Part shown: positions 3,285 to 56,597 of the stretch, piece by piece
How positions within the stretch are numbered: position 1 is the first letter of the stretch
Layout of the letters: the number at the start of each line of letters is the position of its first letter
Virus record (IMG/VR): IMGVR_UViG_3300047476_002078
Span: 1 to 64,000 of that record
Length of the DNA stretch: 64,000 nucleotides
Reading direction: 5' to 3' (one strand)
The notes under the pieces: model-generated
What the model saw: the letters and a program-made list of their open reading frames with translations, nothing else
Told to the model about the DNA's origin: nothing
The model's database searches: none
Program-made: the position numbers and the translations under genes

Positions 3285-3308
3285 TTGATCTAATGGGGTT
3301 TAATTTAG

Positions 3309-17717: not shown

Positions 17718-17722
17718 CTATA

Positions 17723-17953
17723 ATGGCATCTCCTTATGAAAAAGAGGTAATTGATATTCTTTTAAAAACAAAAGGAAAAGCTGTGTGCTTTTTGGTTTTG
17801 GATGGCTCAAAAGGAACTAGCTTTGAAGTAAGGTCTGTTGATGAAAAATACATGCGGAGTCTGCCAAAAATTTTAATAGAAATAGCCAGTAAAATTGAAG
17901 GCGAATTGAACGAAAAAGATTTAAAGAAGAAAATGGAAAATTTAGATGTTTGA
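17723..17953 (+). CDS. Hypothetical protein
   Basis: 76-aa ORF inside the operon. Confidence 0.6.
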   Translation: MASPYEKEVIDILLKTKGKAVCFLVLDGSKGTSFEVRSVDEKYMRSLPKILIEIASKIEGELNEKDLKKKMENLDV

Positions 17954-19035: not shown

Positions 19036-21279
19036 ATGAAATCCAACAAAATTGAAAATAAAATTATTGAGACAACTGCTTGGTACGCCAAAACTTTTAA
19101 AGAAAGTCACGGCACTTCCTACGCTTTTAGAAATTTTAAAGTTCTAAAATTTTTAGGGGAAACCTCAAAAGCTTATCATGTTGATGTAGAGTTTTTTTCA
19201 GGTATCTCTTGCACTTGCGGAGTCTGCGGAAGGATTCTATCGAACGCAGTTTCTAAAGCGACTGGAATTGGTCCCGTTTGTGCTGAAAAAATAGGTCTTC
19301 CAAGACCAACACTAGAGTCGGCAAAAGAAACCGTTAAATTAATGGAATCTTTATCACAACAACAAGGTCAATTTACAAGTATTTGGATTCCAAAATCACA
19401 AATTAAAAGAATCGTAGGTGAAGACGGACAAATAATCGAAGGAGACTCTCCTGAATCTGAAAATGATTCAGAAAAAGTAGAAGTTAAATTAGAACATGAG
19501 ATAAAAGTTTCAGGTCAAGAAGTTACTTTCAAATTTAAAGGCGGAGATTTCCAAAATATTTTGAATAAGATGCGTTCAATGAACGGTAAGTGGGATGCTT
19601 CTTCTAAGTCATGGGTAGTATCTCTACAAAATGTAAAAAAAGAATCAAACTCCCTTAAACTTTTAGGATTTAATTTTGATTTAAGCGTGGAAGATGCAGA
19701 AGTCGAAAAGCCTTTGATGCAAATATCCATTGAAGATGATACTGCAATTATCAATTCACCTTATAACTCTCAATTGGTTAATTTTTTCAGAAATAACTCA
19801 GGGTTTATTTATAACGCTTCAAATCACTCAAGAAAGATTAACATTATTTCAGGAGCAGAGACTCTAAAAAAACTTATAGAATTTGCAAAGAATATAGGAT
19901 TTGAAGTTGATGAATCTATAAGCTCTCACCTTGAGGATTTAAAACAAAAGAAAATCGAACTTGAAGCAACAAAAAAAGATTTCACGATTGATCTAAATCT
20001 TGGAATGAAGGTTAAACCATACCCATATCAAATGGCAGGAATTAAGTTCATTGATCTTGCTAACGGCAGAGCAATTGTTGGAGATGAGATGGGTCTTGGA
20101 AAAACTATGCAGGCTTTAGGATGGGTAGCTTGGAGAAAAAAGAAAGCTCTTGTTATTTGTCCTAATTCTTATAAACTCGGTTGGGCTAGAGAGATAACTA
20201 AGTTCACAAATTGCACTAGCCAAGTTTTAGGAAGTAAAAATGTTGAATTTGAGCAATCTGATTTTACGATTATCAACTATGAAAATATTAAAAAACATGA
20301 TTTTTCAAAATTAAATTACGATACAGTTATTATTGATGAATCTCATAAAATTAAAAATTCTAAAACACAAAGATTCGAGTCTTGTGATAAAATTGTATCC
20401 AAATCAAAACATGTAATTTTGCTGACAGGTACAGCGATTGTTAATAGACCTGTTGAATTTTACACACAGCTTAAAATGGTTTCACCTTCATTAGTCGGTT
20501 CTTATGGTTCTTATACTGCTAAATTTTGTGGAGGTCACAATAACGGTTACGGTTGGGATACTAATGGGGCTACGAACTTGGATGAGTTAAGCAAACTTAT
20601 TTCTCCTATCTACCTTCGCAGGATTAAATCAGAAGTTCTTACTGAGTTACCTTCAAAAATTCATCAAGATATAATGATTGAAGGGGTTAAAGTAAAATTA
20701 AATAGACATTCAAAAAACGCTCTTGATGAAATTAATAATCTGAAAATTGAGTTAGCTAAGGAAAAAGTTAGTCATACAATCGAGTTCGTCGAAAACATGG
20801 TTGAGAATGGGGACAAGGTAATTGTTTTCAGTGACTATATTGAGACTGCTAAAAGTATAGCAGATGCTCTTGGAGAAAAAGCTGTATGCTATTTAAGTGA
20901 ACTTTCAACAGAAGAAAGATTCGAGATTGAAAAGAAATTTCAAGAAGATGAAAATGTAAGAGTTTTTGTCGCCACTATGAAAGTCGCAGGGGTAGCACTT
21001 ACTTTAACGGCAGCTAACAAAGTATGTTTTAATGATCTTCCGTGGACTCCGGGCGATTTAAGACAGTGTGAAGATAGAGCACATAGAATCGGTCAAAAAA
21101 ATTCAGTAAATGTTTACAAGATGGTAGCTGAAGGAACGCTGGACGAGTACATTAATGATCTTCTAAACGACAAAATACGTATTCTTGATGCGGTACTTGA
21201 TGGAAAAGAAATTTCGTCTTCTGATAGAGCTATCTTAGATTTATCAATAGAATCAAAGCTTTGTAATATGGTGCGTTAA
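19036..21279 (+). CDS. SNF2-family helicase with N-terminal zinc finger and HARP-like region
   Basis: CGVCGRIL..S.ATGIGPVC; GDEMGLGKT, IIDESH, LLTGT and QCEDRAHRIGQ motifs. Confidence 0.9.
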   Translation: MKSNKIENKIIETTAWYAKTFKESHGTSYAFRNFKVLKFLGETSKAYHVDVEFFSGISCTCGVCGRILSNAVSKATGIGPVCAEKIGLPRPTLESAKETVKLMESLSQQQGQFTSIWIPKSQIKRIVGEDGQIIEGDSPESENDSEKVEVKLEHEIKVSGQEVTFKFKGGDFQNILNKMRSMNGKWDASSKSWVVSLQNVKKESNSLKLLGFNFDLSVEDAEVEKPLMQISIEDDTAIINSPYNSQLVNFFRNNSGFIYNASNHSRKINIISGAETLKKLIEFAKNIGFEVDESISSHLEDLKQKKIELEATKKDFTIDLNLGMKVKPYPYQMAGIKFIDLANGRAIVGDEMGLGKTMQALGWVAWRKKKALVICPNSYKLGWAREITKFTNCTSQVLGSKNVEFEQSDFTIINYENIKKHDFSKLNYDTVIIDESHKIKNSKTQRFESCDKIVSKSKHVILLTGTAIVNRPVEFYTQLKMVSPSLVGSYGSYTAKFCGGHNNGYGWDTNGATNLDELSKLISPIYLRRIKSEVLTELPSKIHQDIMIEGVKVKLNRHSKNALDEINNLKIELAKEKVSHTIEFVENMVENGDKVIVFSDYIETAKSIADALGEKAVCYLSELSTEERFEIEKKFQEDENVRVFVATMKVAGVALTLTAANKVCFNDLPWTPGDLRQCEDRAHRIGQKNSVNVYKMVAEGTLDEYINDLLNDKIRILDAVLDGKEISSSDRAILDLSIESKLCNMVR

Positions 21280-24079: not shown

Positions 24080-26572
24080 ATGATAAGACAACGCCCAAAC
24101 ATTTTAGGAAATGATACAATTACTTCAGATTCTTTTGGAAGCTCTACTGCTATGTCAGGAGACGGTTCCTTGTTAGTTTCTGGAGCTTCAGAGCACAACC
24201 AGACAGGAGCCGTTTACGTCTTTTCTCTGGGAGGAGATTCTCTTTATTCACAGATTCAAAAAATAGTCTCAGATGACATAGCCACTGGAGATAATTTTGG
24301 GATTTCTGTAGATATAAGTAAAGATGGTAGCGTAATTGTAGTAGGGGCATCCGGAACAACCATAGCAGGGAAATCAAATTTCGGGTGTGCTTATGTTTTC
24401 AGAAAATCTGGTAATTCTTGGATTCAAGAAGCAAAACTTTTCACATCTTTATTATCGACGACAACTTCTCAACCTTTTTTTGGTTCAAATGTTGCAATAA
24501 GTGGAGACGGCAATACTATTGTTGTTTCTAACAAGTCAGAAACAAAAGATGTACAGTACGCTCTTTGCTTTTATTACGACGGGGTTTCTTGGACTGAGAA
24601 ATTTTTGCCATATTCAGAACCGGCGGAAGTTTACAACACTGAGTATAATTGGAAGGTGTCTGTAGATTTTAACGGCGAATTTATAGTATCTTCAAAAGCT
24701 CTTGCACAAAACGGAACAGAAGATAATGTAGGCTCTGTATTTGTTTATAAAAAAAATGAAGGGTCTTATCAAAATTTTCAAACATTAAATATAAGTAGAG
24801 AAACATTTCCGAATATATTCTCTATGGGGACTAGCCTATATTTTACTGAAAATGGGTTGAGTGTTTTAGCAAGTGCCCCAAAATCTAACTTAGATGAATT
24901 TTCTGAATTAGGTGCAATTTGCGTATTTAACAGGCATAGAAGAGATTTAACATTTTCGAGTTCACCTGAAGTATTTTATCCAAGAAATACTGACCAAGTA
25001 GATAATTTACGCTTTGGTTTAAAAATATCATGTAGTGAAAACGCTGAAAATTTAATTATATCTTGTAACGGAAGTGCTTATCTTTATAACAGATCACCGA
25101 AATTAAGTTCTTGGGAGTTCATGAATTTAATTTTAGCAAGTGATTATGGAATATCAGAAGTAGATTTTGCAAGTGATGTTGTGTGTTCTAAAGATTTCAT
25201 GTTTTTTTCTATAGCCTCTAAAAATCATTTGAGTAAAGGTGTAGTAACTCCTTTTAAAGTTCAATATAGAATATTTTTAAATGATTTTACAAGATTAGGG
25301 TCTTTAACCAAAATTTTTGATACCTCTATTGTACAAAATGAATTTTCAAATCCTACAGGTTTTATTGAACTTAGACAGCCGAGCCAATCCGCCGTATTTC
25401 AAAAATTAACAATAAACTCTTTATCTTCTTTTAATAAGTTAAAACTTAAATTGAACAAGATCGGAACTCCCACAGGGTTAATAGCTGTCAGAATAATTAG
25501 AGAGTCTGGTGTTTTACCATCTACAAGTGAAAATAATGTTTATGTTTCTTGGTTTGTAGATAGTGAAGAACTAACAGAAGGTGAAAACGAAGTTGTTTTA
25601 GATTTTCCTGTGAGACTTTCAAGCGGTAATTTTTATATTCAAATAGAACCATACAGTTATGATTCTTGGTCTGAAGGATTGAATGAAGTAGCTGTAGCTG
25701 TTGTTATTAATTCATCCTCACCTGATATTTTATTATACGACAGCGGTCTTCAGAATTACTCGGCTGTTACAAGCACATCATTGGTTTATTCTTTAGAGCT
25801 TTCGTCCTCTGTGTACAGAGGTCAGTTTAATTTTTTAAACTTTCCAGTTTTAGATACGTCAAATCCTCATATTGTATTAACAAAACAAGAGCCTTTCAAT
25901 TATTTTGGTGGGGAATTATTGGCTTTTGATATTGATGGAAACATTAAATCTTTTACTTTAGCTCAACCTGCAATAGCTGGAGCGGCTACTGCATCTGAAC
26001 TTGCTTCTTCTTTAAATATAGATTTAGCTTCTATTGGAGGTCAGGCAGAGGTAGTAAACGGAAGAGTAAAAATATCTTCAACGACTGAAAACGGTTACGC
26101 TAAATTTTTTCATACGTTTAATACTGTTTCACAAATTGGAACAGGTAGTTCAATGGATATTTTTAAATTTCAAAAAGGTTACTTTTGTAAGAATTGGAAA
26201 CCTGACATTTTAAGTAGAGCTAGAGTAAGTGTTCCTTTCAATAAGCAAGTGGTATCAGCTTGGAAATTTGCAGATATACCAGAATTTTATGCTAATTCTA
26301 CCATCTCAAATTATTTGGATGATGAAACCCTTTCTGTAGGAGAAGCCCAAAGTATAAAAGTTGAAGTTTACGATTCAAATGAATGGTCTTGGACTAAACA
26401 GCAAATAGTAGAGTTTGGTGTAACAAATTTTATTGAAAAACCGTTTACTCAGATTGTTAGTAATACTCAAAATGTCTCAATACCTTCAAGCGAAACATCT
26501 CACTTAAACGTAGTTTTATTTGAAGACACTATTGACGGAGTTGTTCATTACGGAGCTTTCTGGTATTTATAA
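24080..26572 (+). CDS. Virion protein with FG-GAP-type beta-propeller (receptor-binding/baseplate candidate)
   Basis: Repeated FG.SVxISxDG..IVVGA...G.(A/V)YVF units in the N-terminal ~400 aa. Confidence 0.75.
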   Translation: MIRQRPNILGNDTITSDSFGSSTAMSGDGSLLVSGASEHNQTGAVYVFSLGGDSLYSQIQKIVSDDIATGDNFGISVDISKDGSVIVVGASGTTIAGKSNFGCAYVFRKSGNSWIQEAKLFTSLLSTTTSQPFFGSNVAISGDGNTIVVSNKSETKDVQYALCFYYDGVSWTEKFLPYSEPAEVYNTEYNWKVSVDFNGEFIVSSKALAQNGTEDNVGSVFVYKKNEGSYQNFQTLNISRETFPNIFSMGTSLYFTENGLSVLASAPKSNLDEFSELGAICVFNRHRRDLTFSSSPEVFYPRNTDQVDNLRFGLKISCSENAENLIISCNGSAYLYNRSPKLSSWEFMNLILASDYGISEVDFASDVVCSKDFMFFSIASKNHLSKGVVTPFKVQYRIFLNDFTRLGSLTKIFDTSIVQNEFSNPTGFIELRQPSQSAVFQKLTINSLSSFNKLKLKLNKIGTPTGLIAVRIIRESGVLPSTSENNVYVSWFVDSEELTEGENEVVLDFPVRLSSGNFYIQIEPYSYDSWSEGLNEVAVAVVINSSSPDILLYDSGLQNYSAVTSTSLVYSLELSSSVYRGQFNFLNFPVLDTSNPHIVLTKQEPFNYFGGELLAFDIDGNIKSFTLAQPAIAGAATASELASSLNIDLASIGGQAEVVNGRVKISSTTENGYAKFFHTFNTVSQIGTGSSMDIFKFQKGYFCKNWKPDILSRARVSVPFNKQVVSAWKFADIPEFYANSTISNYLDDETLSVGEAQSIKVEVYDSNEWSWTKQQIVEFGVTNFIEKPFTQIVSNTQNVSIPSSETSHLNVVLFEDTIDGVVHYGAFWYL

Positions 26573-32979: not shown

Positions 32980-33699
32980 GTGATGCAAAATGGGAAAACT
33001 CTTATATTTACTATAGCTTTTAATCGTCTTGAGATGATTAAATTTTCTATTTTAAATGTCGTCACTCATGCTAAAAACGCTCGTTTTGTAATATGGGATA
33101 ATGCTAGTGATCGAAAGCTTTTAGACTTTTGTCGGTACATTGTTAAAAATAACACTGAAAAGTCCCTCGAAATATTATACTTCGCATCAAAAAATATTGG
33201 TTTAAACGCAGCTAAAGAGATAGTTGAAAAATTTTCTGAGGGTTGTGAATTTATCATGAGTGTAGATGAGGATATTCTGTATCTACCTTTTAATTTTCAA
33301 TCTGATCTTCAATACTTACTAAAACAACAAGTTAAACCTTTAGGTTATGTGGCGTGTAATGTAATTCAAGATAAATTAACTAATGGTGCTAAACCTCCAG
33401 AAGATAGCTATCAAGAAATTGATGTAGGCTTACCTATTTTAATCGGACCTACCGGCGGATGGGCTTCCATGACAACCTCTTCAGTATATCAAAAAATAGG
33501 AGGATACTCTCAATCTAGCGAGGGCTTCTATGGTCTTGATGGTCTTTTTAGCAAAAAATGTCATGACAATGGTTTGTACACGGCGTTATCAAAAAATACT
33601 ATTTGTTATCATGCTACAGGTCCAAAATGGAATCATTATTTTAACTACGGTCAAATATATGATAAAAAATTAGAGATGTTTAAGAAATCAAAAACATGA
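32980..33699 (+). CDS. GT2-family glycosyltransferase
   Basis: IAFNR, VIWDNAS, NIGLNA, SVDED, KIGGY..FYGLDG and CYH motifs. Confidence 0.85.
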   Translation: MMQNGKTLIFTIAFNRLEMIKFSILNVVTHAKNARFVIWDNASDRKLLDFCRYIVKNNTEKSLEILYFASKNIGLNAAKEIVEKFSEGCEFIMSVDEDILYLPFNFQSDLQYLLKQQVKPLGYVACNVIQDKLTNGAKPPEDSYQEIDVGLPILIGPTGGWASMTTSSVYQKIGGYSQSSEGFYGLDGLFSKKCHDNGLYTALSKNTICYHATGPKWNHYFNYGQIYDKKLEMFKKSKT

Positions 33700-34490
33700 A
33701 GTTAGCAATTACTACAGATACCCATTATGGGTTTGACGCAAAAACTCATAGAATCCATGAAAAATTTCTTACAAGATTAAAAGAAATCTGTGATTTAGAA
33801 AAAGTGGAAGCTTTAATTCATACTGGCGATTGGATTTCTAATAATCAGCATCAATTACCAAGAACTTGGAATATGTTTAGAAAATTTCTTGGAGATTTAC
33901 CAATTTTGACTGTTTTAGGAAATCACGATTTTTGGCAACAAGAAGTATGGAACAGTAAAAAAAGTAGTTATAAAAGAGATAAAATAACAACCATTCCTGT
34001 TCTCAATGAACAGCATTACGAATGGGCTTTAGAAAATAAAATACATCTTTTACAAGGAAATCCATACATAAGTAATGATATTGTTTTTTATGGATTTAAT
34101 GGTTGGTATCATCATCCTAATCCACCAACTAATGACGCTGTTAATATGTGTAAAATGTATGAAACTGCTCCGACAGGATTGTATTTTTCTTATCAAGCTA
34201 ATAAGGAATTAGAAAAAATACTAATAGATGTTGACCAGCATCCTATCAAAAAGAAAGTCTGTGTTACTCATTTTCCTCCTTACAGTAAAAATCCGAATTA
34301 CGAAATTTATTGTGCCAATACCTCTTATTTAGATTTTATATCAGAAAAATTTGATTTACTTGTTGTAGGTCATTCTCATCAAACAGAAGATTGGATTTCA
34401 AAATCTTGTAGAGTTGTTAATGCAGGAACTAATTTTGATAAATTTAGCGGTGGGTATAATAAACCGAATTTTTTAATCATAGATATTTAA
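33696..34490 (+). CDS. Calcineurin-like metallophosphoesterase
   Basis: TDTH, HTGD, LGNHD, VTHF and GHSH motifs. Confidence 0.88.
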   Translation: MKLAITTDTHYGFDAKTHRIHEKFLTRLKEICDLEKVEALIHTGDWISNNQHQLPRTWNMFRKFLGDLPILTVLGNHDFWQQEVWNSKKSSYKRDKITTIPVLNEQHYEWALENKIHLLQGNPYISNDIVFYGFNGWYHHPNPPTNDAVNMCKMYETAPTGLYFSYQANKELEKILIDVDQHPIKKKVCVTHFPPYSKNPNYEIYCANTSYLDFISEKFDLLVVGHSHQTEDWISKSCRVVNAGTNFDKFSGGYNKPNFLIIDI

Positions 34491-34902: not shown

Positions 34903-35652
34903 TTATACCTTGTTTAAAGTTTTTCCCATGATATTGTCTATATATCCAAACTGACAACTAAGTGTGAATCTTTCTTTTTCACATTTCATTGGATGCACTT
35001 TATGAAGAAGTCTTGGGTTCATATTGTCTAGTGTAATTAAAGTTCCGTGATTTGGTAAAACGTCTGCCAGAATACTAATTATTTCTTTTGGAAGACCTTT
35101 ATCGTCAATAGAACAATCAGATATGCTGAGATAGCCTCCATCGTTTTTAGTAAAATCTGAATCCCCTAAATACAGAATGTTGTTAAACCATGTCGAATCA
35201 GACAGATCATGATGCCATCCCAAGCTCTGATTTAATTTGTATTTGTGTGCTAACATGTAGCGATGGGTAAAATTACCATATATTGAAGTAAACCAATCCA
35301 TAGAATTTTCTACATTGAGCCAAAATTCCGTAAACATTTCAGGATAGTTATTGAAAGGTCTTTCAGATGAGTGCGGTCCATTAACCCCATTGACCCAAAT
35401 ATCTGGATGTTTTACTTCTTTCCAATCAAAACTTAGAGACTTTTTTAAATCTACATTAAAATCTGGTTCAATGACCTGACCGTTAGATGCTAGGTAATTT
35501 TTGGATTCGTAAACATCAAAAACATTTCCAGCATCAACAAAAACTTCGCTTTTTAAACAATTGAGTAGTTTGTCGGAATTTTCTTTTTTTAATTTCCTTA
35601 CAACAAAACCTTTTGAAAAAAAGTGATCTAAGTCAAATTCATCCTCGAACAT
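34903..35652 (-). CDS. 2OG-Fe(II) oxygenase, paralog 1
   Basis: WHHD..ILYL..DGGYL..PNHGTL..LHKV..ERF. Confidence 0.88.
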   Translation of the reverse strand: MFEDEFDLDHFFSKGFVVRKLKKENSDKLLNCLKSEVFVDAGNVFDVYESKNYLASNGQVIEPDFNVDLKKSLSFDWKEVKHPDIWVNGVNGPHSSERPFNNYPEMFTEFWLNVENSMDWFTSIYGNFTHRYMLAHKYKLNQSLGWHHDLSDSTWFNNILYLGDSDFTKNDGGYLSISDCSIDDKGLPKEIISILADVLPNHGTLITLDNMNPRLLHKVHPMKCEKERFTLSCQFGYIDNIMGKTLNKV

Positions 35653-36328
35653 ATTTTTTAGTCTCTTTGTTTATTACATTATTGAAGTATCCTAGCTGAC
35701 ATACAAGGGCATAACGTGTTTTATCAGAAAAAAGCTTTTCAACTTTATGCAAAACGCTTGGGTTATAATTTGATATGGTAACAAGTGTTCCGTGATTTGG
35801 TAGAATTTTTATTTTACTTTCTACAGTGTCTTTTATTGGAATACCTTTCCCTGTTATATTACAGTGTCCTACCTCTAAATAACCTCCATCTTCAAGTTTC
35901 CATGTGTCGTCGGTAAGATATAATATGTTTAATAGAAGTGTCGCATCCGTTACATCGTAGTGCCATCCCATGCCATCATCTTTATTGTATTTATGAGCCA
36001 TGATTGTTCTATGGGTAAAACTTCCATAAAGTTTTGGAAACCATGAAAAGTATTCGGATTCAGATAAATTCTTCCAAAAATCTTGAAATAAATTAGGAGC
36101 GGAATTGAAAGGGCTTTTCTTGTCCCATAGAGGAGCTTTGGGGTGTATAATCCCATCCCAACTTTCTTTTAAAGCAACACTCGAAGGATTATCTAAAGAA
36201 TAGACATCATCTTCTTCAATATAATCATCTTTTTTTATAGCTTGTAATAATTGATCTGCCTCAGATTTATCAATTTTGGTAAATGTAAATCCATCACGAA
36301 AAAAATTATTTAGATTAAATTTTTCCAT
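35639..36328 (-). CDS. 2OG-Fe(II) oxygenase, paralog 2
   Basis: WHYD..ILYL..DGGYL..PNHGTL..LHKV..TRY. Confidence 0.88.
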   Translation of the reverse strand: MEKFNLNNFFRDGFTFTKIDKSEADQLLQAIKKDDYIEEDDVYSLDNPSSVALKESWDGIIHPKAPLWDKKSPFNSAPNLFQDFWKNLSESEYFSWFPKLYGSFTHRTIMAHKYNKDDGMGWHYDVTDATLLLNILYLTDDTWKLEDGGYLEVGHCNITGKGIPIKDTVESKIKILPNHGTLVTISNYNPSVLHKVEKLFSDKTRYALVCQLGYFNNVINKETKKYVRG

Positions 36329-36896
36329 ATAAATGCTCCAAAAATCCCGTCTGGCAAGATAAAGCTATGCGTGTTTTTTCCGATTTTACCGTAGATACCT
36401 CATGTAATATACAAGGATTTAAGTTATTAATTGTAACTAAAGTTCCGTGATTAGGGGAAATCTTTTTTAATACTTTGTAGGAGCCGTTATTTTTCCCATC
36501 GTTATTTATGTTGCATTGAGAAATAATTAACTCTCCTCCATCTTCAGGATAAAAAGTTTCATCTGTTAGATATAAAATACTTAATATAAAAGACCTGTCT
36601 AAAACATCATTATGTGTTTCCATAGCTTCACCTATTTCATAACGATGTGCAATAATATTTTTGAAAGAAAAATTTCCAAATAGTTTAAAAAATGCGTATG
36701 AGTTTAGACGTTTATGCCAATAGTAATCAATATCTTTATTATAAAAGTTAAGGCATGTTTGATTTCTTAAATACCCTTCAGATTTTTCTTCATAAGAATA
36801 GTTTAACTTTTTTGCTTCTTTTAGTAGCAAGTCAGCGTCGGATTTATCTATTTTTTCAACGCAGTAACCAAATTTAAAAAATAAGTTTATATCCAT
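36315..36896 (-). CDS. 2OG-Fe(II) oxygenase, paralog 3
   Basis: THND..ILYL..DGGEL..PNHGTL..LHEV..TRI. Confidence 0.88.
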   Translation of the reverse strand: MDINLFFKFGYCVEKIDKSDADLLLKEAKKLNYSYEEKSEGYLRNQTCLNFYNKDIDYYWHKRLNSYAFFKLFGNFSFKNIIAHRYEIGEAMETHNDVLDRSFILSILYLTDETFYPEDGGELIISQCNINNDGKNNGSYKVLKKISPNHGTLVTINNLNPCILHEVSTVKSEKTRIALSCQTGFLEHLYGKI

Positions 36897-36945
36897 CTAT
36901 ATTAAATTATAACAACAAACGTCGTAGATATGATAGGTTTTAGTA

Positions 36946-37641
36946 ATGTTTTACGGTAAATTTGACGTAAATTCTTTTTTTAAAAATGGTCACACCGTCG
37001 GTAAACTTGATGATAATACTTCAGATTATTTGTTGAATTTGATTGAAAAAGAAAAATTTGCACAAGCTGAACAAAAGAATCTATTTTTAGACAATCCAGA
37101 TCACCCAGATGCTAAATTAGAGTATCCTGAAATATGGACAGAAAACGGAAATATCGTACAAGCTTTTTCTCGCCAAAATTACAACCCTGAATTGATACAG
37201 TTTTGGAAAGAATTTTCAGATAGTAACTTAAAATGGTTTAAAGATTATTTTGGCTCATTTGATGATATGACTATGTTAGCTCATAATTTTAAAATTAATA
37301 ATGAGATAGGTTTTCATACAGATTACATTGAAGCTTCTTATTTAGGGGTCATTGTTTATCTTGGGGATAGAAATTTCACGAAAGATGACGGAGGGTATTT
37401 GGAATTAGCTAAGTGCAAAGTAGATAATGAGGGAACGCCTCTAATCGACACAGTTCAAGTATTAAATCAAATTTTGCCTAATCACGGTACAGTGGTTTTT
37501 ATATCTAATACAAATCCTTGTTTCATGCACAGAGTTGTTCCATTAAAGTCTTGTAAAGTAAGAATTTCGCACGCCTGTAGATTCGGTTTTATTGCAAATA
37601 GAGTTAGTAAGAAAAATTTACCGAATCACGGGTATTTATAA
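36946..37641 (+). CDS. 2OG-Fe(II) oxygenase, paralog 4
   Basis: FHTD..IVYL..DGGYL..PNHGTV..MHRV..VRI. Confidence 0.88.
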   Translation: MFYGKFDVNSFFKNGHTVGKLDDNTSDYLLNLIEKEKFAQAEQKNLFLDNPDHPDAKLEYPEIWTENGNIVQAFSRQNYNPELIQFWKEFSDSNLKWFKDYFGSFDDMTMLAHNFKINNEIGFHTDYIEASYLGVIVYLGDRNFTKDDGGYLELAKCKVDNEGTPLIDTVQVLNQILPNHGTVVFISNTNPCFMHRVVPLKSCKVRISHACRFGFIANRVSKKNLPNHGYL

Positions 37642-37655: not shown

Positions 37656-38021
37656 ATGAAATTTAATTTTGAATACCACGGAGAAAACTACGATTTCGAT
37701 GTGATTATTGAAAAACAACTCAACAGTTATTCAATAATTTCCACAAATAAAGAAATTTCTATGAAATCTGAAGTAATGTTTCAAGAAAATGGGGATATAA
37801 GAATACTAAAACCTGTAAGTTTTATTTTAAAAGACCCAAAGATACAAATTAGTGACTACGTAATAAAAGTTTTTGTAAAAGCTACAAGGATAGCCTCAGT
37901 TTTAACCAATTTTCCTGAATTAAGCGTGGCAGATGCCAAAAATTTAATAGACCTGTTTGGTGACGAAGTGGCTATAAACTGCTCCGCTTTGAACATGAAA
38001 TTTTGTATGGAAATCCACTAA
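37656..38021 (+). CDS. Hypothetical protein
   Basis: 121 aa, RBS AAGGGG. Confidence 0.6.
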   Translation: MKFNFEYHGENYDFDVIIEKQLNSYSIISTNKEISMKSEVMFQENGDIRILKPVSFILKDPKIQISDYVIKVFVKATRIASVLTNFPELSVADAKNLIDLFGDEVAINCSALNMKFCMEIH

Positions 38022-39196
38022 TATTTACTGATTATATGAAAAAAACAAACATTTTGTTAAGTTATCTAGTTACGGGTCTTCCAGATGAAGGGAAAACATC
38101 TTTTTCCATAGCTTTAGCCAAAATTTCGGGTGATTACTTTGTTAGTGGGTGTCAGCCTATTTTTAACCCTAAAAGCATAGTAATAATGTTGGATAGATCA
38201 TTTTACTTATTTATAGGAGAAAACCCAGCAACTACAAAATATTCAATAACTACAGCTATTCACAAAGATGCCAAGCTGGACAAAGACGAGTTTCTAAAAG
38301 TAGTAATTAAAGAAATTGATGAAATGTTAGAATACAACCCGAATCAGATCATAATAGAAGGCTACGTTTTAAATTTTATTAAAGAAGAAGTAGAAAATTA
38401 TTTAAAAGATAAAACATTATCTGCTCACATTAGAATGAGAAATTATGTAATACATTATTTGGATGAGGTTTATTCAACTAAGAGGTGCGAAAGTCCGAAT
38501 AGTTATACAGATGAAATAGTTGTAGCTTATAGAGATGCTATTCAATTGTTAAAACAAAAATTAGTTGAAGTTCACGGCAAAAACATTTTATCTCAAGTAA
38601 ATTATCAAGCTTTTCCTGACTTAGGAATAAATGTTAAAAATTCAGACAGCATTAAAAAATTTAAGAGCTTAAATCTAAAAAATTTACAAGACAAAAAAGT
38701 TTTGGACGTTGGGTGTAACCATGGGAGATTTTGCATTGAATCAATTAGGCTAGGTGCTTCCGTAGTTCATGGCATAGATAGTAACAAAAATTTTCTACAT
38801 ACTGCTTCAGCTTTAAATAATATTTTTTATCGCTATAACATTTCTTTTTTTGAATGTGATTTTTTAAATTTTAATCAGTCTAATTATGACATTATTATTG
38901 CTTGTTCCGTGTTTCATTATTTTAAAGAAAATCAACCTGAATTTTTTAAGAAAGCTTATGATTTGTTGGTTAAAGATGGTGTCTTAATTCTTGAAGCAGG
39001 AATATCTGATTTGCATCCAGATAAAGAATTTATTGAAAAGTATCAAAGAGGTGTGGACCCTACACCTTGTCACTTTCCAAATCATTTAGCTTTACTTGCC
39101 ATGGCTCAAGGCTTTAAGTGTGAATATCTAGGTAGTTCCGTTAATCAGCATGGGGATAGAATAAACAGGAAAGTTTATCATTTAAGGAAATTATAA
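38003..39196 (+). CDS. Class I SAM methyltransferase with N-terminal P-loop-like domain
   Basis: VTGLPDEGKTS; KVLDVGCNHG..GID and SVFHY motifs; start may be the ATG at 38036. Confidence 0.78.
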   Translation: MYGNPLIFTDYMKKTNILLSYLVTGLPDEGKTSFSIALAKISGDYFVSGCQPIFNPKSIVIMLDRSFYLFIGENPATTKYSITTAIHKDAKLDKDEFLKVVIKEIDEMLEYNPNQIIIEGYVLNFIKEEVENYLKDKTLSAHIRMRNYVIHYLDEVYSTKRCESPNSYTDEIVVAYRDAIQLLKQKLVEVHGKNILSQVNYQAFPDLGINVKNSDSIKKFKSLNLKNLQDKKVLDVGCNHGRFCIESIRLGASVVHGIDSNKNFLHTASALNNIFYRYNISFFECDFLNFNQSNYDIIIACSVFHYFKENQPEFFKKAYDLLVKDGVLILEAGISDLHPDKEFIEKYQRGVDPTPCHFPNHLALLAMAQGFKCEYLGSSVNQHGDRINRKVYHLRKL

Positions 39197-41187
39197 TGTC
39201 TATTAAAATAGCAAAAATTTTAGCAAAAATAGCTTTAACTTATGAAGAGTATAAAAATCTTCATCCTAAAACTAAAAAAACTCCAGATGATCCACTGTTT
39301 TCAAAAGAAAAAGAAAAAAAGAAAATAAAAAAAGATGTTCCTAATAATACAAAAAATAAAAAGGAAGAATCTAAACAAATTAAAAAGACTACCAAAGAAA
39401 TGTCTGACGACGAAATCGTAGAAAAATATAAGCCTACTTTTTCTGGGGGCGAGTTTCAGAGAAAAATGAATTTTGATGAACTTGGAAAGTATGCGGAAAA
39501 AATGTCTTCAGATGATTTAGCTTACCATCTTGTAAATAGCCCGATACCAGAGGATGAAGGGCATCCGTTTTTTCAATCGGCTAATTATAAGATTGGGAGA
39601 TTTAACGGATTTATGTTACAGCTTTTCAATCCCAACGTGAGCAAAGATGAAAGAACTTCGCTCGCCAGTTACATATTAGATAAAGCTGGAGTTTCTTTTG
39701 TTGGGGGAAGAACTTTAAATCAATTTATAACAGCCTTAGCGAAAAAAGGGTTAATTGATAAAAGTCTTTCTGAAGAATCAGAGTATGATAAATTAAGAAC
39801 TGATCTTTATTATGGAAATATATCTGACTCAGAAGAAATAAGAAAATACGCTAAAGAAAGAGATGGGAAAAGTATGAAGTGGGCGTATCAATTAAAAACT
39901 AATCCGTTCACTCCTTCGGATGTTCTAGTCAAAATTTATCAAGAACATGGTTCAGACTCTTCCTATAAAGAAGTTTTAAGACATAAAAATTTTCCAATAG
40001 AAACACTATTAAAAATAAGACCCCCTACATCTTCTGATAATTATTCTTTTTATTTAGATAGAGAAGATGTACCAAGTCAAATTCAACAACAAATAATTGA
40101 AACTTACATCATGAAGGGTAATGGTTTTTCAATACCTAAAAACTTTAATTTTTCAGAAAAACAACTTTCTGAATTATGGAGAAAAAACCTAGCTTCTCAC
40201 AAAAAATCAAACAAAGAAAAAGCTCAAAAAAGCCAAGACGGATTTATTTACCCTACTGATACAGAGTACGGTCTTTCAAAATGGGCAGAGCATCCAAACT
40301 GTCCCAAAGAGATACTTACAGAAATATTAAATTGGGAAAATAAGCAAGATAGAGAAGGTGGAGTACATTTCTCAATATCAAAAGCAAAAGTTTCTGCTTA
40401 TCAAAACTTAGTTAAAAGAAATATTTTAAAAAAAGAAGATATTGTTAATAAAGTAAAAGAGACTTTAAATTTACACGGTGATGAAGAAATTCTTCAAAAA
40501 TTTGGAGAAAGAGCTTACTGTTCTGAAAATCAAAAAAATGTTGTAAAAAGAACTATTACTAAAGTTTCTCCTGAAGAAAAATTAAAAATACAAGAAGAGA
40601 TGAATAAGACCGCAGTTCACGACGATTTTGATTATGATGTTTTAGAAGTATATGAGATAGATAAAGAGCCTCACAAAGACTTTGAAAATACCGAAAAAAG
40701 AATCAATAATGTTTTTAAAAATGTGTATCATGGTACATCATTTTCAAATGCAGGAGGTATTTTGGCTGACGGTATCAATACTGATTCAAAAGCTAGAACA
40801 GGTCAAATGTTTGGGCAGGGTTTTTATTTAGCTTCAGCCTCTTCAAAAGCAGTTCAATATGCGTCTGATAACTTCTCCAAGAATGAAGGGGAGGGCGTAG
40901 TTTTTCTTTTGGACGCAAGTATGGGAAAAACGACTGAGATGAAATACGGAAGACCTGCTAACGATGATATATCTCGTGTTGAATGGAAAGATGAAATCAA
41001 AAAAAAGAAAGAAGAGTACGAGAAAAATACAGGCAAGACCACTAACACTTATTGGCATTTAGAGCACGATTCAGTTATAGCTAAAGCAGGCATGTCTTTA
41101 GATCACGATGAATATGTGGTTAAGGATTCTTCTCAACTGAGAATAAAAAGAATAGTTCACGTTAAAAAGAAACCAAAAGCAGGCTAA
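39196..41187 (+). CDS. PARP-family (ARTD, H-Y-E) ADP-ribosyltransferase with long N-terminal region
   Basis: VYHGT..NAGGILADG..TGQMFGQGFYLA..SKAVQYA..VFLLDA.MG..HDEYVV; helical NP.TP..L repeats upstream. Confidence 0.9.
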   Translation: MSIKIAKILAKIALTYEEYKNLHPKTKKTPDDPLFSKEKEKKKIKKDVPNNTKNKKEESKQIKKTTKEMSDDEIVEKYKPTFSGGEFQRKMNFDELGKYAEKMSSDDLAYHLVNSPIPEDEGHPFFQSANYKIGRFNGFMLQLFNPNVSKDERTSLASYILDKAGVSFVGGRTLNQFITALAKKGLIDKSLSEESEYDKLRTDLYYGNISDSEEIRKYAKERDGKSMKWAYQLKTNPFTPSDVLVKIYQEHGSDSSYKEVLRHKNFPIETLLKIRPPTSSDNYSFYLDREDVPSQIQQQIIETYIMKGNGFSIPKNFNFSEKQLSELWRKNLASHKKSNKEKAQKSQDGFIYPTDTEYGLSKWAEHPNCPKEILTEILNWENKQDREGGVHFSISKAKVSAYQNLVKRNILKKEDIVNKVKETLNLHGDEEILQKFGERAYCSENQKNVVKRTITKVSPEEKLKIQEEMNKTAVHDDFDYDVLEVYEIDKEPHKDFENTEKRINNVFKNVYHGTSFSNAGGILADGINTDSKARTGQMFGQGFYLASASSKAVQYASDNFSKNEGEGVVFLLDASMGKTTEMKYGRPANDDISRVEWKDEIKKKKEEYEKNTGKTTNTYWHLEHDSVIAKAGMSLDHDEYVVKDSSQLRIKRIVHVKKKPKAG

Positions 41188-41197
41188 AGCCTGCTTT
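41176..41197. terminator. Bidirectional hairpin between convergent genes
   Basis: aaagcaggc-taaa-gcctgcttt. Confidence 0.75.
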
Positions 41198-41462: not shown

Positions 41463-41569
41463 CTTTTCCTCCCTAAATTGAACCGTATTTTAATAATCAT
41501 CAAACTTATTTAATGCTTAATCAAGTTAAAAATGATAGATTTTACCGTAAATATATTTTGCGTGTGGTT

Positions 41570-42466
41570 ATGAATTGGATTCGAGGACAAAAATTTCAAA
41601 ATAAGATAATTCATTTGGCGATAAATTCATATCGTTTAGGGGATAATATTGCTAGTTTCCCAACCCTTAGATATTTAGTAAGTAATGGAAAAAATTATGG
41701 AATAAATTATAAAGTTCATGTAATAAATCAACATTTAAACGACTTATATCGTTTAGCCTTGCCTGAATTAGTATTTGATAATTTTACAGGCAGCAATTTT
41801 CCACATTTAACTCATTTTGCCTTTAGTAATGTACCTACATTTGCCTCGAATTTAGTCGATTACATATCCTTTAATTTGGCTCAAACTAGCCTTTCAAAAG
41901 AAAATAAAAAGTATCCTTTGCTAAACCCTCCAGCGTTTAATTTTGATTTTGATGTGTCGAAATCAATAATTATTTCAGTAGGTCACACTTGGGAAAACAA
42001 AAAATTTACAACTAAATTTATTGAAGATATTTCCGATTGGGTGAATTCAAAAGGGTATTTGCCAGTTCTAGTAGGTACTACTAATAAAAATTTTGACATA
42101 ATGCAATACGCATCATCCTGTGAAAAATCTATCAATTTAGTAGATAAGACAAACTTGATAGAATTGTTATATTTAATTTCTAACTCTAAAGCTGTGATAA
42201 CTCAGGATAACGGAATACTTCACCTTTCAGCACTAACAAAAACCCCAATAGTAGTCGGATTTACAGCAACGATGCCTGAACATGCCCTCCCAATTAGAGA
42301 GGACATATTTCCAATTGAAACAGGTGTAGATTGTAAATTTTGTGCGGTAAAAGGCATCCATACTTTTAAAAGTTTTAACATTTGCCCTTATGGAGATTAT
42401 CTATGTATAGAGGATTTAAAAGCAGAAAAATTTATTAAAGTTTTAAGTGAAAAAGTTTTTAAATGA
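41570..42466 (+). CDS. GT9 (heptosyltransferase-like) glycosyltransferase
   Basis: RLGDNIA..P.LR, W..KKF and ITQDNGILHLSA motifs; the in-frame ATG at 41570 is preferred over 41513. Confidence 0.8.
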   Translation: MNWIRGQKFQNKIIHLAINSYRLGDNIASFPTLRYLVSNGKNYGINYKVHVINQHLNDLYRLALPELVFDNFTGSNFPHLTHFAFSNVPTFASNLVDYISFNLAQTSLSKENKKYPLLNPPAFNFDFDVSKSIIISVGHTWENKKFTTKFIEDISDWVNSKGYLPVLVGTTNKNFDIMQYASSCEKSINLVDKTNLIELLYLISNSKAVITQDNGILHLSALTKTPIVVGFTATMPEHALPIREDIFPIETGVDCKFCAVKGIHTFKSFNICPYGDYLCIEDLKAEKFIKVLSEKVFK

Positions 42467-44802: not shown

Positions 44803-45153
44803 ATGAACTTTGTTGCTGACTTTTATAATATCATTTCAAAATGCCAGTTTTCTTTAGAATCTGAAGAAGAGTTGAAACTGCAAATTTCAAGCGTCTTAGA
44901 ACGACATAATTTTGATTTTAAAAAAGAGTTTAGATTAGATTCAAAAAATAGGTTAGATTTTTACATTCATGATTATGCAGTAGAGGTAAAAATAAAAGGC
45001 TCTGCTATGAGCATCTACAGACAGTGTGTTCGATATTGTCAATTTAAGGAAGTAAAAGGTTTATTTCTCATTACAAATAAGTCTATGGGGTTTCCCACAG
45101 AGATTAATCAAAAACCTTGTTATTTAATAAATTTAGGTAAAAGTTGGCTTTAA
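44803..45153 (+). CDS. Small PD-(D/E)xK nuclease-like protein
   Basis: E..L, KEFRL..RLDF..AVEVK motifs. Confidence 0.65.
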   Translation: MNFVADFYNIISKCQFSLESEEELKLQISSVLERHNFDFKKEFRLDSKNRLDFYIHDYAVEVKIKGSAMSIYRQCVRYCQFKEVKGLFLITNKSMGFPTEINQKPCYLINLGKSWL

Positions 45154-46814
45154 TGTTTAGATATTACGGTTCTATAAAATTTGATTCTAAAAATAATAGA
45201 TGGACAATAGAACAAATTGAACCGCATGTTTCAATTAAACTAAAATCTATTTTCACAAAAATTGCAAAATGGAAAACCGTTCCAATACATTTTGAAAATA
45301 CTCAAGAAAATTGCAGAGAATTAGAATGGTTTATTTCTCGATACCCTTTAGAAATGAGCGAAGAAGATCACAGTTATTTATTATCGCAAAAATTTAATCA
45401 TCTAAAAAAATTAGAAGATTTAGAAAAAATACTTAAACCTGATTATTCTCCAAGAGTTTTTCCACTGAAAGGTGAACTAAGACCTTATCAAGCTACCGCT
45501 GTTGAAATATTTCTACGCAACAAGCGGTTGTTAATAGGAGATGGAGTAGGATTGGGTAAAACTCTGTGCGGTATAGCTTCTGCTTTAGAGCCTTCTACGC
45601 TTCCAATGGCAGTAGTGGTTCAAACTCATTTACCGACGCAATGGAAAGAGCAGTTTGAAAAGTTTACTGATCTTAAAGTTCATCTAATTAAAGGAACAAA
45701 ACCGTATAATTTACCAACCGCAGATATTTATATTTGGAAATATTCATGTTTGTCTGGATGGGTTGATGTTTTTAAAATGGGATTTTTAAAATCTGTTGTA
45801 TTTGATGAGTGCCAAGAATTACGTATATCTGGTTCACAAAAATATGAAGGAGCGAAAGTTTTAACTTCAAATGTGGACTATGTTCTGGGTCTTTCTGCTA
45901 CCCCTATTTATAATTATGGTGATGAAATTTATAACATAATGAATCTAATCAAAGAAGGCTGTTTAGGAAACATTTATGATTTTATGAGAGAGTGGGCAGG
46001 AGGAGGGAATGGTAAACAAATTAAAAATCCAAAAGCTTTGGGAACTTATTTAAGAGAAAATTTTCTCTTTATTAGAAGAACAAGAGAAGACGTTCAAAGA
46101 GAATTACCTCCAGTAAACAAAATCGTACACACTGTAGATTTCGATAAAGAAGCTGTAGATAATATTGAGGAAATAGCGAAGAAATTGGCTATTTCTGTTA
46201 CGACAGGAACTTTTGTAGAAAGAGGAAAAGCCGCTCGTGAATTAGACATAATGGTTCGTCAGGCTACAGGAGTGAGTAAAGCAAAGTATGTGGCAGAATA
46301 TGTAAAGATTTTGTTAGAAAACGGGGAGTCTGTTCTTTTGGCAGGATGGCATAGAGCCGTTTACGATATATGGTTAAAAGAGTTATTTCAGTACAACCCA
46401 GTTATGTACACTGGTTCGGAAGATGTTAAAGAAAAAGATGCTGCTAAAAAGGCTTTTATTGAAGGTAAATCTCAATTAATGATTATATCACTTCGTTCCG
46501 GAATAGGATTAGATGGTCTTCAAGAGAGGTCTTCTCTGGTAGTTTTTGGGGAATTAGATTATTCTCCAGCCGTTCATGAGCAAGTGATAGGACGCTTAGA
46601 CAGGGATGGTCAAAAAAATCAAGTAACTAGCATTTATTTAATTAGCGATAGCGGCTCAGACCCTTTGATGGTTGACTTATTGGGCTTAAAAGCCTCTCAA
46701 GCCAAAGATATTATTGACCCTATGAATAACCAAGTGACTTTCCAAAATAGTGATGATACTCGTATTAAACTTCTAGCAGAGCTTTACCTTAAAAAAGCAG
46801 GAAATAATGGATAA
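45153..46814 (+). CDS. SNF2-family helicase (second copy)
   Basis: LRPYQ, GDGVGLGKT, VFDECQ, LSATP and QVIGRLDRDGQ motifs; TAATG-coupled to the nuclease. Confidence 0.9.
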   Translation: MFRYYGSIKFDSKNNRWTIEQIEPHVSIKLKSIFTKIAKWKTVPIHFENTQENCRELEWFISRYPLEMSEEDHSYLLSQKFNHLKKLEDLEKILKPDYSPRVFPLKGELRPYQATAVEIFLRNKRLLIGDGVGLGKTLCGIASALEPSTLPMAVVVQTHLPTQWKEQFEKFTDLKVHLIKGTKPYNLPTADIYIWKYSCLSGWVDVFKMGFLKSVVFDECQELRISGSQKYEGAKVLTSNVDYVLGLSATPIYNYGDEIYNIMNLIKEGCLGNIYDFMREWAGGGNGKQIKNPKALGTYLRENFLFIRRTREDVQRELPPVNKIVHTVDFDKEAVDNIEEIAKKLAISVTTGTFVERGKAARELDIMVRQATGVSKAKYVAEYVKILLENGESVLLAGWHRAVYDIWLKELFQYNPVMYTGSEDVKEKDAAKKAFIEGKSQLMIISLRSGIGLDGLQERSSLVVFGELDYSPAVHEQVIGRLDRDGQKNQVTSIYLISDSGSDPLMVDLLGLKASQAKDIIDPMNNQVTFQNSDDTRIKLLAELYLKKAGNNG

Positions 46815-49060: not shown

Positions 49061-49717
49061 ATGTCTATAAACATAAATCATTTTTTTAATTACGGTTACT
49101 CAGTGAGTCAAATTCCTGTCGAATTAGCGGATGCTTTGTTAGAAACAGTGAGAAAGCAAAATTATTCTGTTTGTGATGGAACTTACAAATCAAATTTGGA
49201 GGCTCCTTTACTAGCTTCTTGGAATAGTGAGCTTTTACCTAAAACTTCTAACATTGGTGAAACTCCTCCAATTTTAGAGTCTCTTCAAGCGATTTTAAAA
49301 GAAATGGGTTTTTTAAATTGGTTTGAGATTAACTTTGGGGTCTTTAGTCAATTTTCGGTAATGGTCAACAAATTTTCAAAAAATAATGGGATGATTTGGC
49401 ATAATGACCATTTAGATTCAACTTTTTTAAGTGTTTTAATTTATCTTTCTAAAGATATTTTTGAAGAAAATGATGGCGGATATTTGGAGTTAGGTAGGAT
49501 ATACAACACTGATTATGTAATGGATGCTAGACCTCCTTCAGAAGAAGTTAGCTTATTAAGAAGTGTCTTGCCAAATCACGGAACAATAGTGCTTTTAAAC
49601 AATACTCAGATAACATCTGTTCACAGAGTTGAAAAAATGATTTCAGACAAAGAGCGTTATACAATTCTGTGTCATTTTGGTTATTGGCAAAATATTGTTC
49701 ACAAAAAACGGAAATAA
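49061..49717 (+). CDS. 2OG-Fe(II) oxygenase, paralog 5
   Basis: WHND..LIYL..DGGYL..PNHGTI..VHRV..ERY. Confidence 0.88.
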   Translation: MSININHFFNYGYSVSQIPVELADALLETVRKQNYSVCDGTYKSNLEAPLLASWNSELLPKTSNIGETPPILESLQAILKEMGFLNWFEINFGVFSQFSVMVNKFSKNNGMIWHNDHLDSTFLSVLIYLSKDIFEENDGGYLELGRIYNTDYVMDARPPSEEVSLLRSVLPNHGTIVLLNNTQITSVHRVEKMISDKERYTILCHFGYWQNIVHKKRK

Positions 49718-53357: not shown

Positions 53358-53603
53358 CTATTGTTCCATGTTGAAAATTTTGCATAATAACGCAAGGTGA
53401 ACAATAACTAAAAGCCTGTTTCCTCTTCGCTCTTTTACTCTTAAAGAACCTAGTTCAGGGTAAGTTGCGTAGTCACTACCAGAACTATAATTCGCAGGAG
53501 GTGGGAGAAGTATAGAAACGATCTCATCTTCATCCCAGTGATCTTTGTTACCGTAAAATACGACGTTATCTTTTATATGTGATTTTAACTCTTCAATAGT
53601 CAT
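53358..53603 (-). CDS. Hypothetical protein
   Basis: 81 aa, coupled to the NADAR gene. Confidence 0.55.
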   Translation of the reverse strand: MTIEELKSHIKDNVVFYGNKDHWDEDEIVSILLPPPANYSSGSDYATYPELGSLRVKERRGNRLLVIVHLALLCKIFNMEQ

Positions 53604-54159
53604 TTTGTTCGCACTTTTTTAACTCTTCTCTGATCTCCATTAAAGCTTCACCTAAAAGATTTTGACCGAAACCAACATTACCTAATTTTCCTGTTCCCCA
53701 CACTAGATCATACGGGTTATCAGAATAAATTAAGCGATCTTTTGTAGAAAGAAGGAGATTTTTCATTTCTTCTTCTCTGAATTTTACTCTTAGTGCTTTT
53801 AACATGATACTATATTTTATACTGTCCCAATCTTCTCTAATGTTTATTTTTGAAGCCATCTTTTTTGCATCTTTTGGATTTGGTGCAAATCGGATGGTTT
53901 CTTGTTCAAAAAAATTTTCTGATTTCATTGCTTGAAAATAATGCTCAACTGTTTGCCAATCCCTTCCATCTATTTCTAATGGAGTTAAAGCGTAGTTAGA
54001 CAACATTGAATATTTTTGATTACTAAAAAAGAAAATAGGAATCGTTGGATTATCTGCACTAATATCGTTATCAAAAATTATGTTAGATTTAGCTTCTTTT
54101 AAGTTCCAGTTTGTTATATGGAGGTTACGGTTAGGATTTAATCTAAAAAGTCCACTCAT
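53593..54159 (-). CDS. NADAR/YbiA-family hydrolase
   Basis: LSNY, TVEHYFQAMK, WD..K..IM..AL..KF, D..WG.G and G.NLLG..LM.IR motifs. Confidence 0.9.
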   Translation of the reverse strand: MSGLFRLNPNRNLHITNWNLKEAKSNIIFDNDISADNPTIPIFFFSNQKYSMLSNYALTPLEIDGRDWQTVEHYFQAMKSENFFEQETIRFAPNPKDAKKMASKINIREDWDSIKYSIMLKALRVKFREEEMKNLLLSTKDRLIYSDNPYDLVWGTGKLGNVGFGQNLLGEALMEIREELKKCEQNDY

Positions 54160-56521: not shown

Positions 56522-56597
56522 TGGAGCGGGCGAAGGGGTTTGAACCCTCGACATCCAGATTGGAAATCTGGCACTCTACCAACTGAGCTACGCCCGC
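56522..56597 (-). tRNA. trnG: tRNA-Gly(TCC)
   Basis: 76-nt cloverleaf GCGGGCG..., anticodon arm CCAGA-TTTCCAA-TCTGG, T-loop TTCAAAC, encoded CCA. Confidence 0.96.

Follow-up and report, generated by a model that had tools for sequence, protein, structure and literature searches.

The DNA stretch analyzed here, referred to as the window, comprises bases 1-64000 of the IMG/VR contig UViG_3300047476_002078, which has a total length of 355,874 bp. One of its genes encodes a 663-residue protein with a poly(ADP-ribose) polymerase (PARP)-type lobe at its C-terminus. Judged from sequence and structure prediction, there is a somewhat better than even chance that this protein is an active, targeted PARP-type ADP-ribosyltransferase (ART) effector of a jumbo phage, equipped with a leader, a linker, a solenoid, and a regulatory partner. 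In the proposed mechanism, a leader of approximately 35 residues would act as a portable address tag that is also present on several unrelated proteins of the phage clade, and a disordered Lys-rich linker would join this tag to the rest of the protein. A helical-repeat region of approximately 390 residues would pick the target, and the C-terminal PARP lobe would move ADP-ribose from NAD+ onto it. A partner protein of approximately 70 amino acids (aa) would regulate the enzyme by inhibiting it, by conferring something like immunity, or by serving as a cofactor. The parts of this system are located in the window as follows.

39196..41187, plus strand: whole PARP-type gene (leader-linker-solenoid-PARP, 663 aa), with an ATG start and no internal stop
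39196..39306, plus strand: N-terminal leader (residues 1-37, MSIKIAKILAKIALTYEEYKNLHPKTKKTPDDPLFSK) with a pair of short helices ahead of an extended basic/Pro/Asp segment
39307..39396, plus strand: Lys-rich low-complexity linker, residues 38-67, with a predicted local distance difference test score (pLDDT) <50
39397..40560, plus strand: all-helical repeat (solenoid) region, residues 68-455, with NPxTP-like turns inside
40585..41166, plus strand: PARP catalytic (ART) domain, residues 464-657, Pfam PF00644
42879..43091, plus strand: partner gene of the PARP family, ~70 aa, with 46% identity (E 3e-19) to the gene that comes directly after the PARP gene in locus L001

The catalytic lobe matches PF00644 with 84.8 bits (curated cut-off 26.7 bits, E 7e-24), and this Pfam family is matched by all 14 members of the protein family to which the window protein belongs. 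When the single sequence was compared with the PDB using phmmer, PARP2 (6e-12) and PARP1 (1e-10) were the best matches. The profile of the 14-member family retrieved PARP1 (1e-20), PARP2 (5e-17), and PARP3 (2e-7), followed by PARP4 and the tankyrases (~1e-5). The signature motif YHGTSFSNAGGILADGINTDSKARTGQMFGQGFYLASASSKAVQYAS is present, with HDEYVV further downstream, and the alignment pairs YHGTS with WHGS, GFYLA with GIYFA, SSKAVQY with SKSANY, and HDEYVV with YNEYIV of PARP1/2. By this alignment, the His-Tyr-Glu (H-Y-E) triad consists of H512 (40729-40731), Y544 (40825-40827), and E639 (41110-41112), and a second Tyr, Y555, is encoded at 40858-40860. Eukaryotic PARP1 and PARP2, the best match in both sequence and fold, have the same triad, the same second nicotinamide-stacking Tyr, and the SK..Y motif. 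H512, Y544, Y555, K551, and E639 are invariant in 14 of 14 members. The preliminary description of this DNA had already claimed a PARP1-like H-Y-E signature that includes the catalytic Glu, and the claim is borne out far beyond chance by the Pfam score and by the invariant triad.

Selection on the gene was estimated against two close orthologues from other metagenomes. The ratio of nonsynonymous to synonymous divergence (dN/dS) is 0.08 for the whole gene, 0.05 for the leader, 0.12-0.18 for the solenoid, and 0.008 for the ART lobe. The AlphaFold2 model of the whole protein has a mean pLDDT of 80.9 and a predicted template-modelling score (pTM) of 0.71. In a Foldseek comparison with the PDB, the top 50 matches are all catalytic fragments of PARP1/2 (E ~2e-10, prob 1.0); the template-modelling (TM) score against PARP1 with the helical domain (HD) deleted is 0.59, and the structural alignment to PARP1/2 has ~15-18% identity. 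The predicted fold is thus of the ARTD type, in line with the preliminary description. No match to the Alt/VIP2 family, that is, to the Arg-Ser-Glu (R-S-E) clade, was found in the protein. The Exotoxin A catalytic and ART-PolyVal profiles reach sub-threshold similarity in most members, and the ART-PolyVal matches (best E 1e-4) are located on the PARP lobe itself. Because the active site is intact and strongly constrained, we infer that the gene product is a catalytically competent, NAD+-dependent H-Y-E ADP-ribosyltransferase of the PARP type. Polymer formation requires the H-Y-E triad but is not ensured by it, as PARP3 and PARP4 illustrate, and the triad does not separate mono- from poly-ADP-ribosylation.

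Outside the catalytic lobe, the phage protein and the eukaryotic enzymes differ. Enzymes of the DNA-dependent PARP1/2/3 type have WGR and/or zinc-finger or BRCT modules for DNA sensing and a helical regulatory domain (PARP_reg) ahead of the ART lobe; searches of the 14 members gave no zinc-finger, BRCT, or WGR match at a Pfam E-value of 1 or lower and detected no PARP_reg domain, and the PARP1 profile match begins only at the ART lobe. The Foldseek alignment of the whole model spans 420-470 columns of HD+ART chains, but with a root-mean-square deviation (RMSD) of 15-18 Å. A PARP helical domain, considered as a candidate for the non-catalytic region, was not retrieved when that region was modelled alone. 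A chassis unlike that of PARP1 carries the PARP-type catalytic lobe. Within this chassis, 13 of the 30 linker residues are Lys or Arg, and both the length and the composition of the linker differ among homologues. The solenoid reaches a pLDDT of 88.8 when modelled alone, and conserved Asn/His-Pro (N/H-P) turns lie within it at residues 114, 145, 236, 265, and 366. The helical NP.TP repeats proposed earlier can be kept as conserved N/H-P turns in an all-helical region, whereas the exact NPxTP occurs just once (N236-P240). No PDB structure matched the solenoid at E<1e-3, and the best structural matches were generic (E>=0.015), namely designed armadillo proteins, importin-alpha, and PPR proteins. 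Similarity to leucine-rich repeat variant (LRV) repeats was weak: phage LRV proteins in BFVD gave E-values from 4e-3 to 0.06, Pfam LRV was matched in 1 of 14 members (E 0.05), and LRV-leaning feature scores from a protein language model (Atlas) were 0.6-0.68. Two proteins, P0019 and P0020, were considered as a sign that the solenoid's first half forms a module of its own and were rejected, both being truncated members of subgroup b. Most likely, the solenoid selects the target of the enzyme.

The leader connects the enzyme with other proteins of the phage clade. Its consensus, derived from eight homologues, is L-x-K-[LI]-A-[IL]-T-[YFW]-x-E-Y-K-x-L-H-P-x-T-K-K-T-P-x-D-P-[LM]-F, and L9, K11, A13, T15, Y19, H23, P24, T26, K28, T29, P30, D32, P33, and F35 are near-invariant in subgroup a. 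Leader residues 4-37 share 71% identity (E 7e-13) with the N-terminus of an unrelated protein of 631 aa that ends in an LPD1 domain, and a second LPD1 protein bearing the leader was found in another metagenome. Altogether, at least six cargo families of this phage clade, unrelated to one another, bear the leader; they also include proteins of 209, 176, 411, and 104 aa and a family of small proteins with an SGKxIP...DHxDAS motif. Its position is always N-terminal, and a low-complexity stretch rich in P/Q/K/A mostly comes next. In L020, a 13.7-kb metagenome contig, three tandem genes (3284..5034) each have the leader at their start; their bodies contain SGKxIP and DHxDAS.AH motifs in common with the small leader proteins of L011, L013/L017, and L019. 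A DUF932 gene lies upstream of these L020 genes. On these sequence comparisons, the leader behaves like a portable N-terminal address tag.

A search of IMG/VR with the leader core as a degenerate DNA pattern found it solely in the source genome, where it occurs three times: in this gene, in a PARP paralogue (~86.9 kb), and in a 209-aa gene beside the paralogue. The paralogue is located as follows.

L005 3956..6988 (contig 86.9-89.9 kb, outside the window): a second PARP paralogue that bears the leader, with 36.5% identity

It is followed by a divergent homologue of the partner and by the 209-aa leader-bearing protein. Within the window, leader profiles built from six and then nine diverse instances matched the open reading frame (ORF) of the PARP protein and no other (next best E 2.9). 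A bare K-x-A is present within the first 30 residues of 14 of the 133 window ORFs, which is about chance level according to a rough composition estimate (K ~0.10, A ~0.04). The K-x-A leader named in the preliminary description is therefore a sound observation in one respect, since K11-I-A13 lies within a real near-invariant leader, but the bare K-x-A is not distinctive in the window, and a window-wide K-x-A leader was rejected because the profile finds the PARP ORF alone. The RelA/SpoT ORF at 10820, whose N-terminus MNLRKIAGRVALKYA is similar by eye (KIAGRVALKY vs KILAKIALTY), was also rejected as a leader carrier, as it has no leader-profile match, and so was L006, which lacks a start codon and is closely preceded by an in-frame stop. 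The sister subgroup of PARP proteins has an unrelated N-terminal domain of 120-220 residues in place of the leader. Language-model features liken this domain (P0010-P0015, residues ~1-220) to ART-PolyVal/AcrIF11 with a score of 0.92; the identity was not adopted, with no PDB sequence match and no conserved catalytic motif.

The small partner gene accompanies the enzyme across the family. In the window, it is placed 1.7 kb downstream of the PARP gene, and three genes lie in between, namely a small ORF on the minus strand, a GT9 glycosyltransferase, and a thioredoxin; the close relatives L024 and L025 have the same displaced arrangement. A partner of ~70-80 aa follows the PARP gene in L001, L010, L011, and L026, as well as after the L005 paralogue, and in the first four loci the two genes overlap or abut at their stop and start codons. 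The divergent homologue in L005 (6091..6348) was recognized at E 2e-10. A profile search of 5.8e9 proteins returned nine partner homologues in total, and all seven readable contexts (7/7) place the partner <2 kb from a PARP-family gene. Because it is found with both PARP subgroups, the partner follows the enzyme body and not the leader. It is most likely a regulator of the enzyme, which could inhibit it or provide something like immunity in the producing cell, or else be a cofactor. A metallophosphoesterase gene comes after the PARP-partner pair in L010 (12068..12775) and L011 (12440..13228). It was rejected as a further conserved partner, as the window copy (33696..34490) is just 19-24% identical and lies 5 kb upstream.

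The family is rare, with ~10 full-length representatives among 1.8 billion cluster representatives. In a tree of ART domains, from which a coverage filter left out the herelleviral proteins and a liverwort PARP, it forms a distinct long-branch clade with a support of 100/99, separate from eukaryotic PARP1/PARP2, and the nearest PARP domains outside the family are almost all from metagenomic proteins. The tree supports the monophyly of the family, not its origin. Because the two subgroups are not cleanly separated on this tree, the N-terminal part has been exchanged within the family. Compared with L024 (1655..3646), the gene at 39196..41187 has an uneven synonymous divergence (dS), which rises from 0 in the linker to 0.24 in the solenoid and to 0.71 in the ART lobe and suggests recombination between related phages within the PARP gene.

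The destination of the leader is a separate matter from the activity of the enzyme. The leader may route its cargoes into the assembling phage head, which would lead to their delivery together with the DNA, as T4 does with Alt. T4 Alt is packaged in the head, is injected, and possesses an N-terminal capsid-targeting sequence. It is the working analogy here, being likewise a phage ART with a short N-terminal tag common to other proteins of the same phage. However, Alt belongs to the R-S-E clade and the present protein to the H-Y-E clade, and the two leader sequences are unrelated. Head routing is favoured because LPD domains belong to polyvalent proteins, which are linked to delivery (PMC5512222), because PMC9503650 infers that many phage ARTs (~44%) are packaged in the head, and because the closest annotated phage PARPs, those of the Herelleviridae, are encoded immediately upstream of the genes for the portal, the procapsid protease, and the major capsid protein. 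The likeness to polyvalent proteins (PMC5512222) is provided by the LPD1 proteins with the same leader; polyvalent proteins contain several fused effector domains, whereas the present protein has a single enzymatic domain.

Several observations weigh against the picture of a targeted, delivered effector. Whereas the herelleviral PARP genes belong to a head module, the present gene lies outside any head-morphogenesis module, amid auxiliary and metabolic genes (2-oxoglutarate (2OG) oxygenases, a methyltransferase, a glycosyltransferase, a thioredoxin, and an exonuclease), and the PARP protein is not fused to a MuF or portal domain. The candidate P1 position in the leader varies among E, D, N, K, and Q, and a Glu-type prohead-protease site was rejected, since this position is not conserved. 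A search for the family or fold of the partner in Pfam and Atlas gave nothing. The solenoid has no specific structural homologue, so that target recognition by it is presumptive. Because of the auxiliary neighbourhood and the missing conserved protease site, packaging into the virion, taken on its own, is given a little less than an even chance. Injection, which the preliminary description had claimed, is plausible by analogy; the roles suggested there, that is, host takeover, defence inactivation, or NAD+ drain, are not discriminated by the present results. A more far-reaching version, which must be regarded as speculative and rather unlikely, holds that the leader is an undescribed tag for a co-delivered set (two PARP paralogues, the LPD1 proteins, and the small-protein families) of uncultured jumbo phages from one clade and that the PARP builds poly-ADP-ribose in the bacterium under the control of the partner. 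If true, phages would have an equivalent of T4 capsid targeting and, at the same time, of the eukaryotic arrangement of a PARP with its cofactor.

The same leader can be understood without packaging. The enzyme may be an intracellular effector, produced once infection has taken place and active in the cytoplasm, with the leader serving as a docking peptide for a hub of the host or phage or for a compartment built by the phage. The auxiliary, non-structural gene neighbourhood agrees with this explanation, as do the clustering of leader-bearing genes with small early-looking ORFs and the leader without a conserved protease site. Linear docking motifs typically consist of a short conserved peptide with a disordered linker behind it. 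On the other hand, delivery is favoured by the association of the leader with LPD1 and by the head modules in which related phage PARPs lie, and no candidate hub was identified; docking in the cytoplasm is the main rival and conceivable, though we would not expect it. Much less probable is a PARP1-like sensor of DNA damage that would flag broken phage DNA and bring in repair, a role that has been proposed for jumbo-phage PARPs (PMC11662467). PARP1 and PARP2 are indeed the closest solved relatives, and a DNA ligase, a 5'-3' exonuclease, an RNase T-like exonuclease, and SNF2 helicases are encoded within ~10 kb. Nevertheless, the DNA-sensing and regulatory domains are undetected in all 14 members, the similarity to PARP1 is confined to the region from the start of the ART lobe, and no PARP helical domain was recovered from the non-catalytic region. 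Moreover, a leader that is common to unrelated cargoes fits a repair factor poorly.

The layout of the two genes resembles that of ART toxin-immunity pairs, in which a small adjacent gene shows the same strict co-occurrence with the ART gene. The protein may accordingly be viewed as mainly a toxin or NADase, for instance for host shut-off or for the exclusion of competitor phages, with the partner as its antidote. Translational coupling of the small downstream gene and the sub-threshold similarity of most members to Exotoxin A and ART-PolyVal point in this direction. In the present lineage, however, the pair is split by three mixed-strand genes and yet kept, which is unusual for tight coupling; a large solenoid of the target-recognition kind is unnecessary for simple NAD+ hydrolysis, and the partner has no recognizable family. 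This explanation is considered improbable, slightly more so than the damage sensor. It is hardly credible that the protein is a catalytically dead scaffold or binding module. Inactive PARP-fold proteins exist in other lineages, but here all NAD+-binding and catalytic residues are invariant (14/14), and the lobe evolves under the very strong constraint given above. An active, targeted effector with a regulatory partner remains the favoured reading of the gene.

PARP-type enzymes in phages are of a kind already known. Comparative genomics has catalogued ARTs of the PARP/PART type in jumbo phages as well as in other viruses (PMC7824862 (3.4.4), PMC9503650 (3.7.1), PMC11662467), and UniProt names PARP-type proteins in several phages. 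The view of the preliminary description that H-Y-E PARPs are sporadic in viruses needs correction, as they are not especially rare there and H-Y-E PARP/PART is listed among the most frequent viral ART families (PMC9503650). The catalogued proteins, such as the 'PARP polymerase' of Bacillus phage YungSlug (QKE56383.1) and those of Pseudomonas phage pf16 and Bodo saltans virus, are likewise large multi-part proteins with a C-terminal ART lobe, and their predicted role is the modification of host macromolecules (PMC7824862, PMC9503650). With the YungSlug protein, similarity is confined to the ART lobe (36% over 145 aa); the present family has a leader, a solenoid, and a partner gene of its own. 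In the literature searched, no experimental study of a phage PARP-type enzyme was found, and the proposals range from host takeover to DNA repair. What appears to be new is the leader, the solenoid without PARP1-type DNA-sensing domains, and the ~70-aa partner, a combination that is undescribed as far as we searched. The family offers three experimental handles, namely a constrained PARP1/2-like active site, a portable leader, and an obligate small partner. Once the destination of the leader is known, it may provide a new protein-sorting signal in jumbo phages, and knowledge of the target and of polymer formation would bear on PARP chemistry outside eukaryotes.

The source of the window is a bacteriophage, specifically a jumbo phage. 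Among GenBank phages, no nucleotide-level match to the window was found. The genome encodes phage-type helicases (phrog_62, E 1e-107 and 2e-85), an ATP-dependent ligase (phrog_114, 1.8e-46), a protein with a CHAP peptidoglycan-hydrolase domain, and one tRNA, tRNA-Gly, and it contains a weak virion-structural match. Shine-Dalgarno (SD)-like cores precede 35 of 64 window ORFs (55%), against a background of 9.8%. It is regarded as a phage of bacteria because of its status as an uncultivated viral genome (UViG) of IMG/VR, its SD usage, the tRNA, the phage-type ligase and helicases, and the CHAP domain. The earlier claim that the enzyme is encoded by a phage agrees with this UViG status, with the phage-type genes, and with the bacterial-type SD signals.

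The PARP gene has the following signals and neighbours.

39184..39189, plus strand: Shine-Dalgarno-like AAGGAA, 6 nt 5' of the ATG, read from the sequence
41176..41197, no strand assigned: GC-rich hairpin AAAGCAGGCTAAAGCCTGCTTT across the PARP stop codon, between convergent genes
38003..39196, plus strand: S-adenosylmethionine (SAM)-dependent methyltransferase, translationally coupled, upstream of PARP (Pfam Methyltransf_25/12/23)
34903..37641: four neighbouring 2OG-Fe(II) oxygenase paralogues, just upstream of the methyltransferase-PARP pair
49061..49717: fifth 2OG-Fe(II) oxygenase copy, assigned from synteny with L024

The start codon of the PARP gene overlaps the stop codon of the methyltransferase gene (TAATG at 39194-39198), and the order of these two genes is kept in L024 and L025. 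The Pfam matches of the methyltransferase cover residues 218-372, and a Walker-A-like GLPDEGKT, read by eye from the translation, is found near the N-terminus, outside the matched region. This suggests that the product is a two-domain NTPase-methyltransferase. The hairpin at the end of the PARP gene is terminator-like in sequence.

Further features of the window are the following.

53593..54159, minus strand: NADAR-domain protein (PF08719, 105.7 bits)
10820..11746, plus strand: RelA/SpoT nucleotidyltransferase-domain protein, 308 aa (PF04607, 57.5 bits)
19036..21279 and 45144..46814: two SNF2-type helicases, one with a DUF6011 N-terminus
56522..56597, minus strand: tRNA-Gly(TCC)
24080..26572: FG-GAP repeat protein, 830 aa
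4572..10415: 1246-aa protein without family, adjoining the CHAP-domain protein

NADAR is a family that removes ADP-ribose, and the window protein could serve in counter-defence or as an eraser for the ARTs of the phage itself. The RelA/SpoT domain is listed among those specific to phage polyvalent proteins (PMC5512222). Like the PARP, the NADAR and RelA/SpoT proteins fit the theme of nucleotide-based conflict between phage and host. Genes for sugar modification are scattered in the window (11956..18575, 41513..42466, and 62901..63821). They include a 694-aa protein in which GT17-like, lumazine-binding, and DegT aminotransferase domains are fused, a PglD-like acetyltransferase, a dTDP-4-dehydrorhamnose 3,5-epimerase, and two glycosyltransferases, one of which is of the GT9 family. 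The ORF at 62901 has an epimerase-like N-terminus, as judged by eye.

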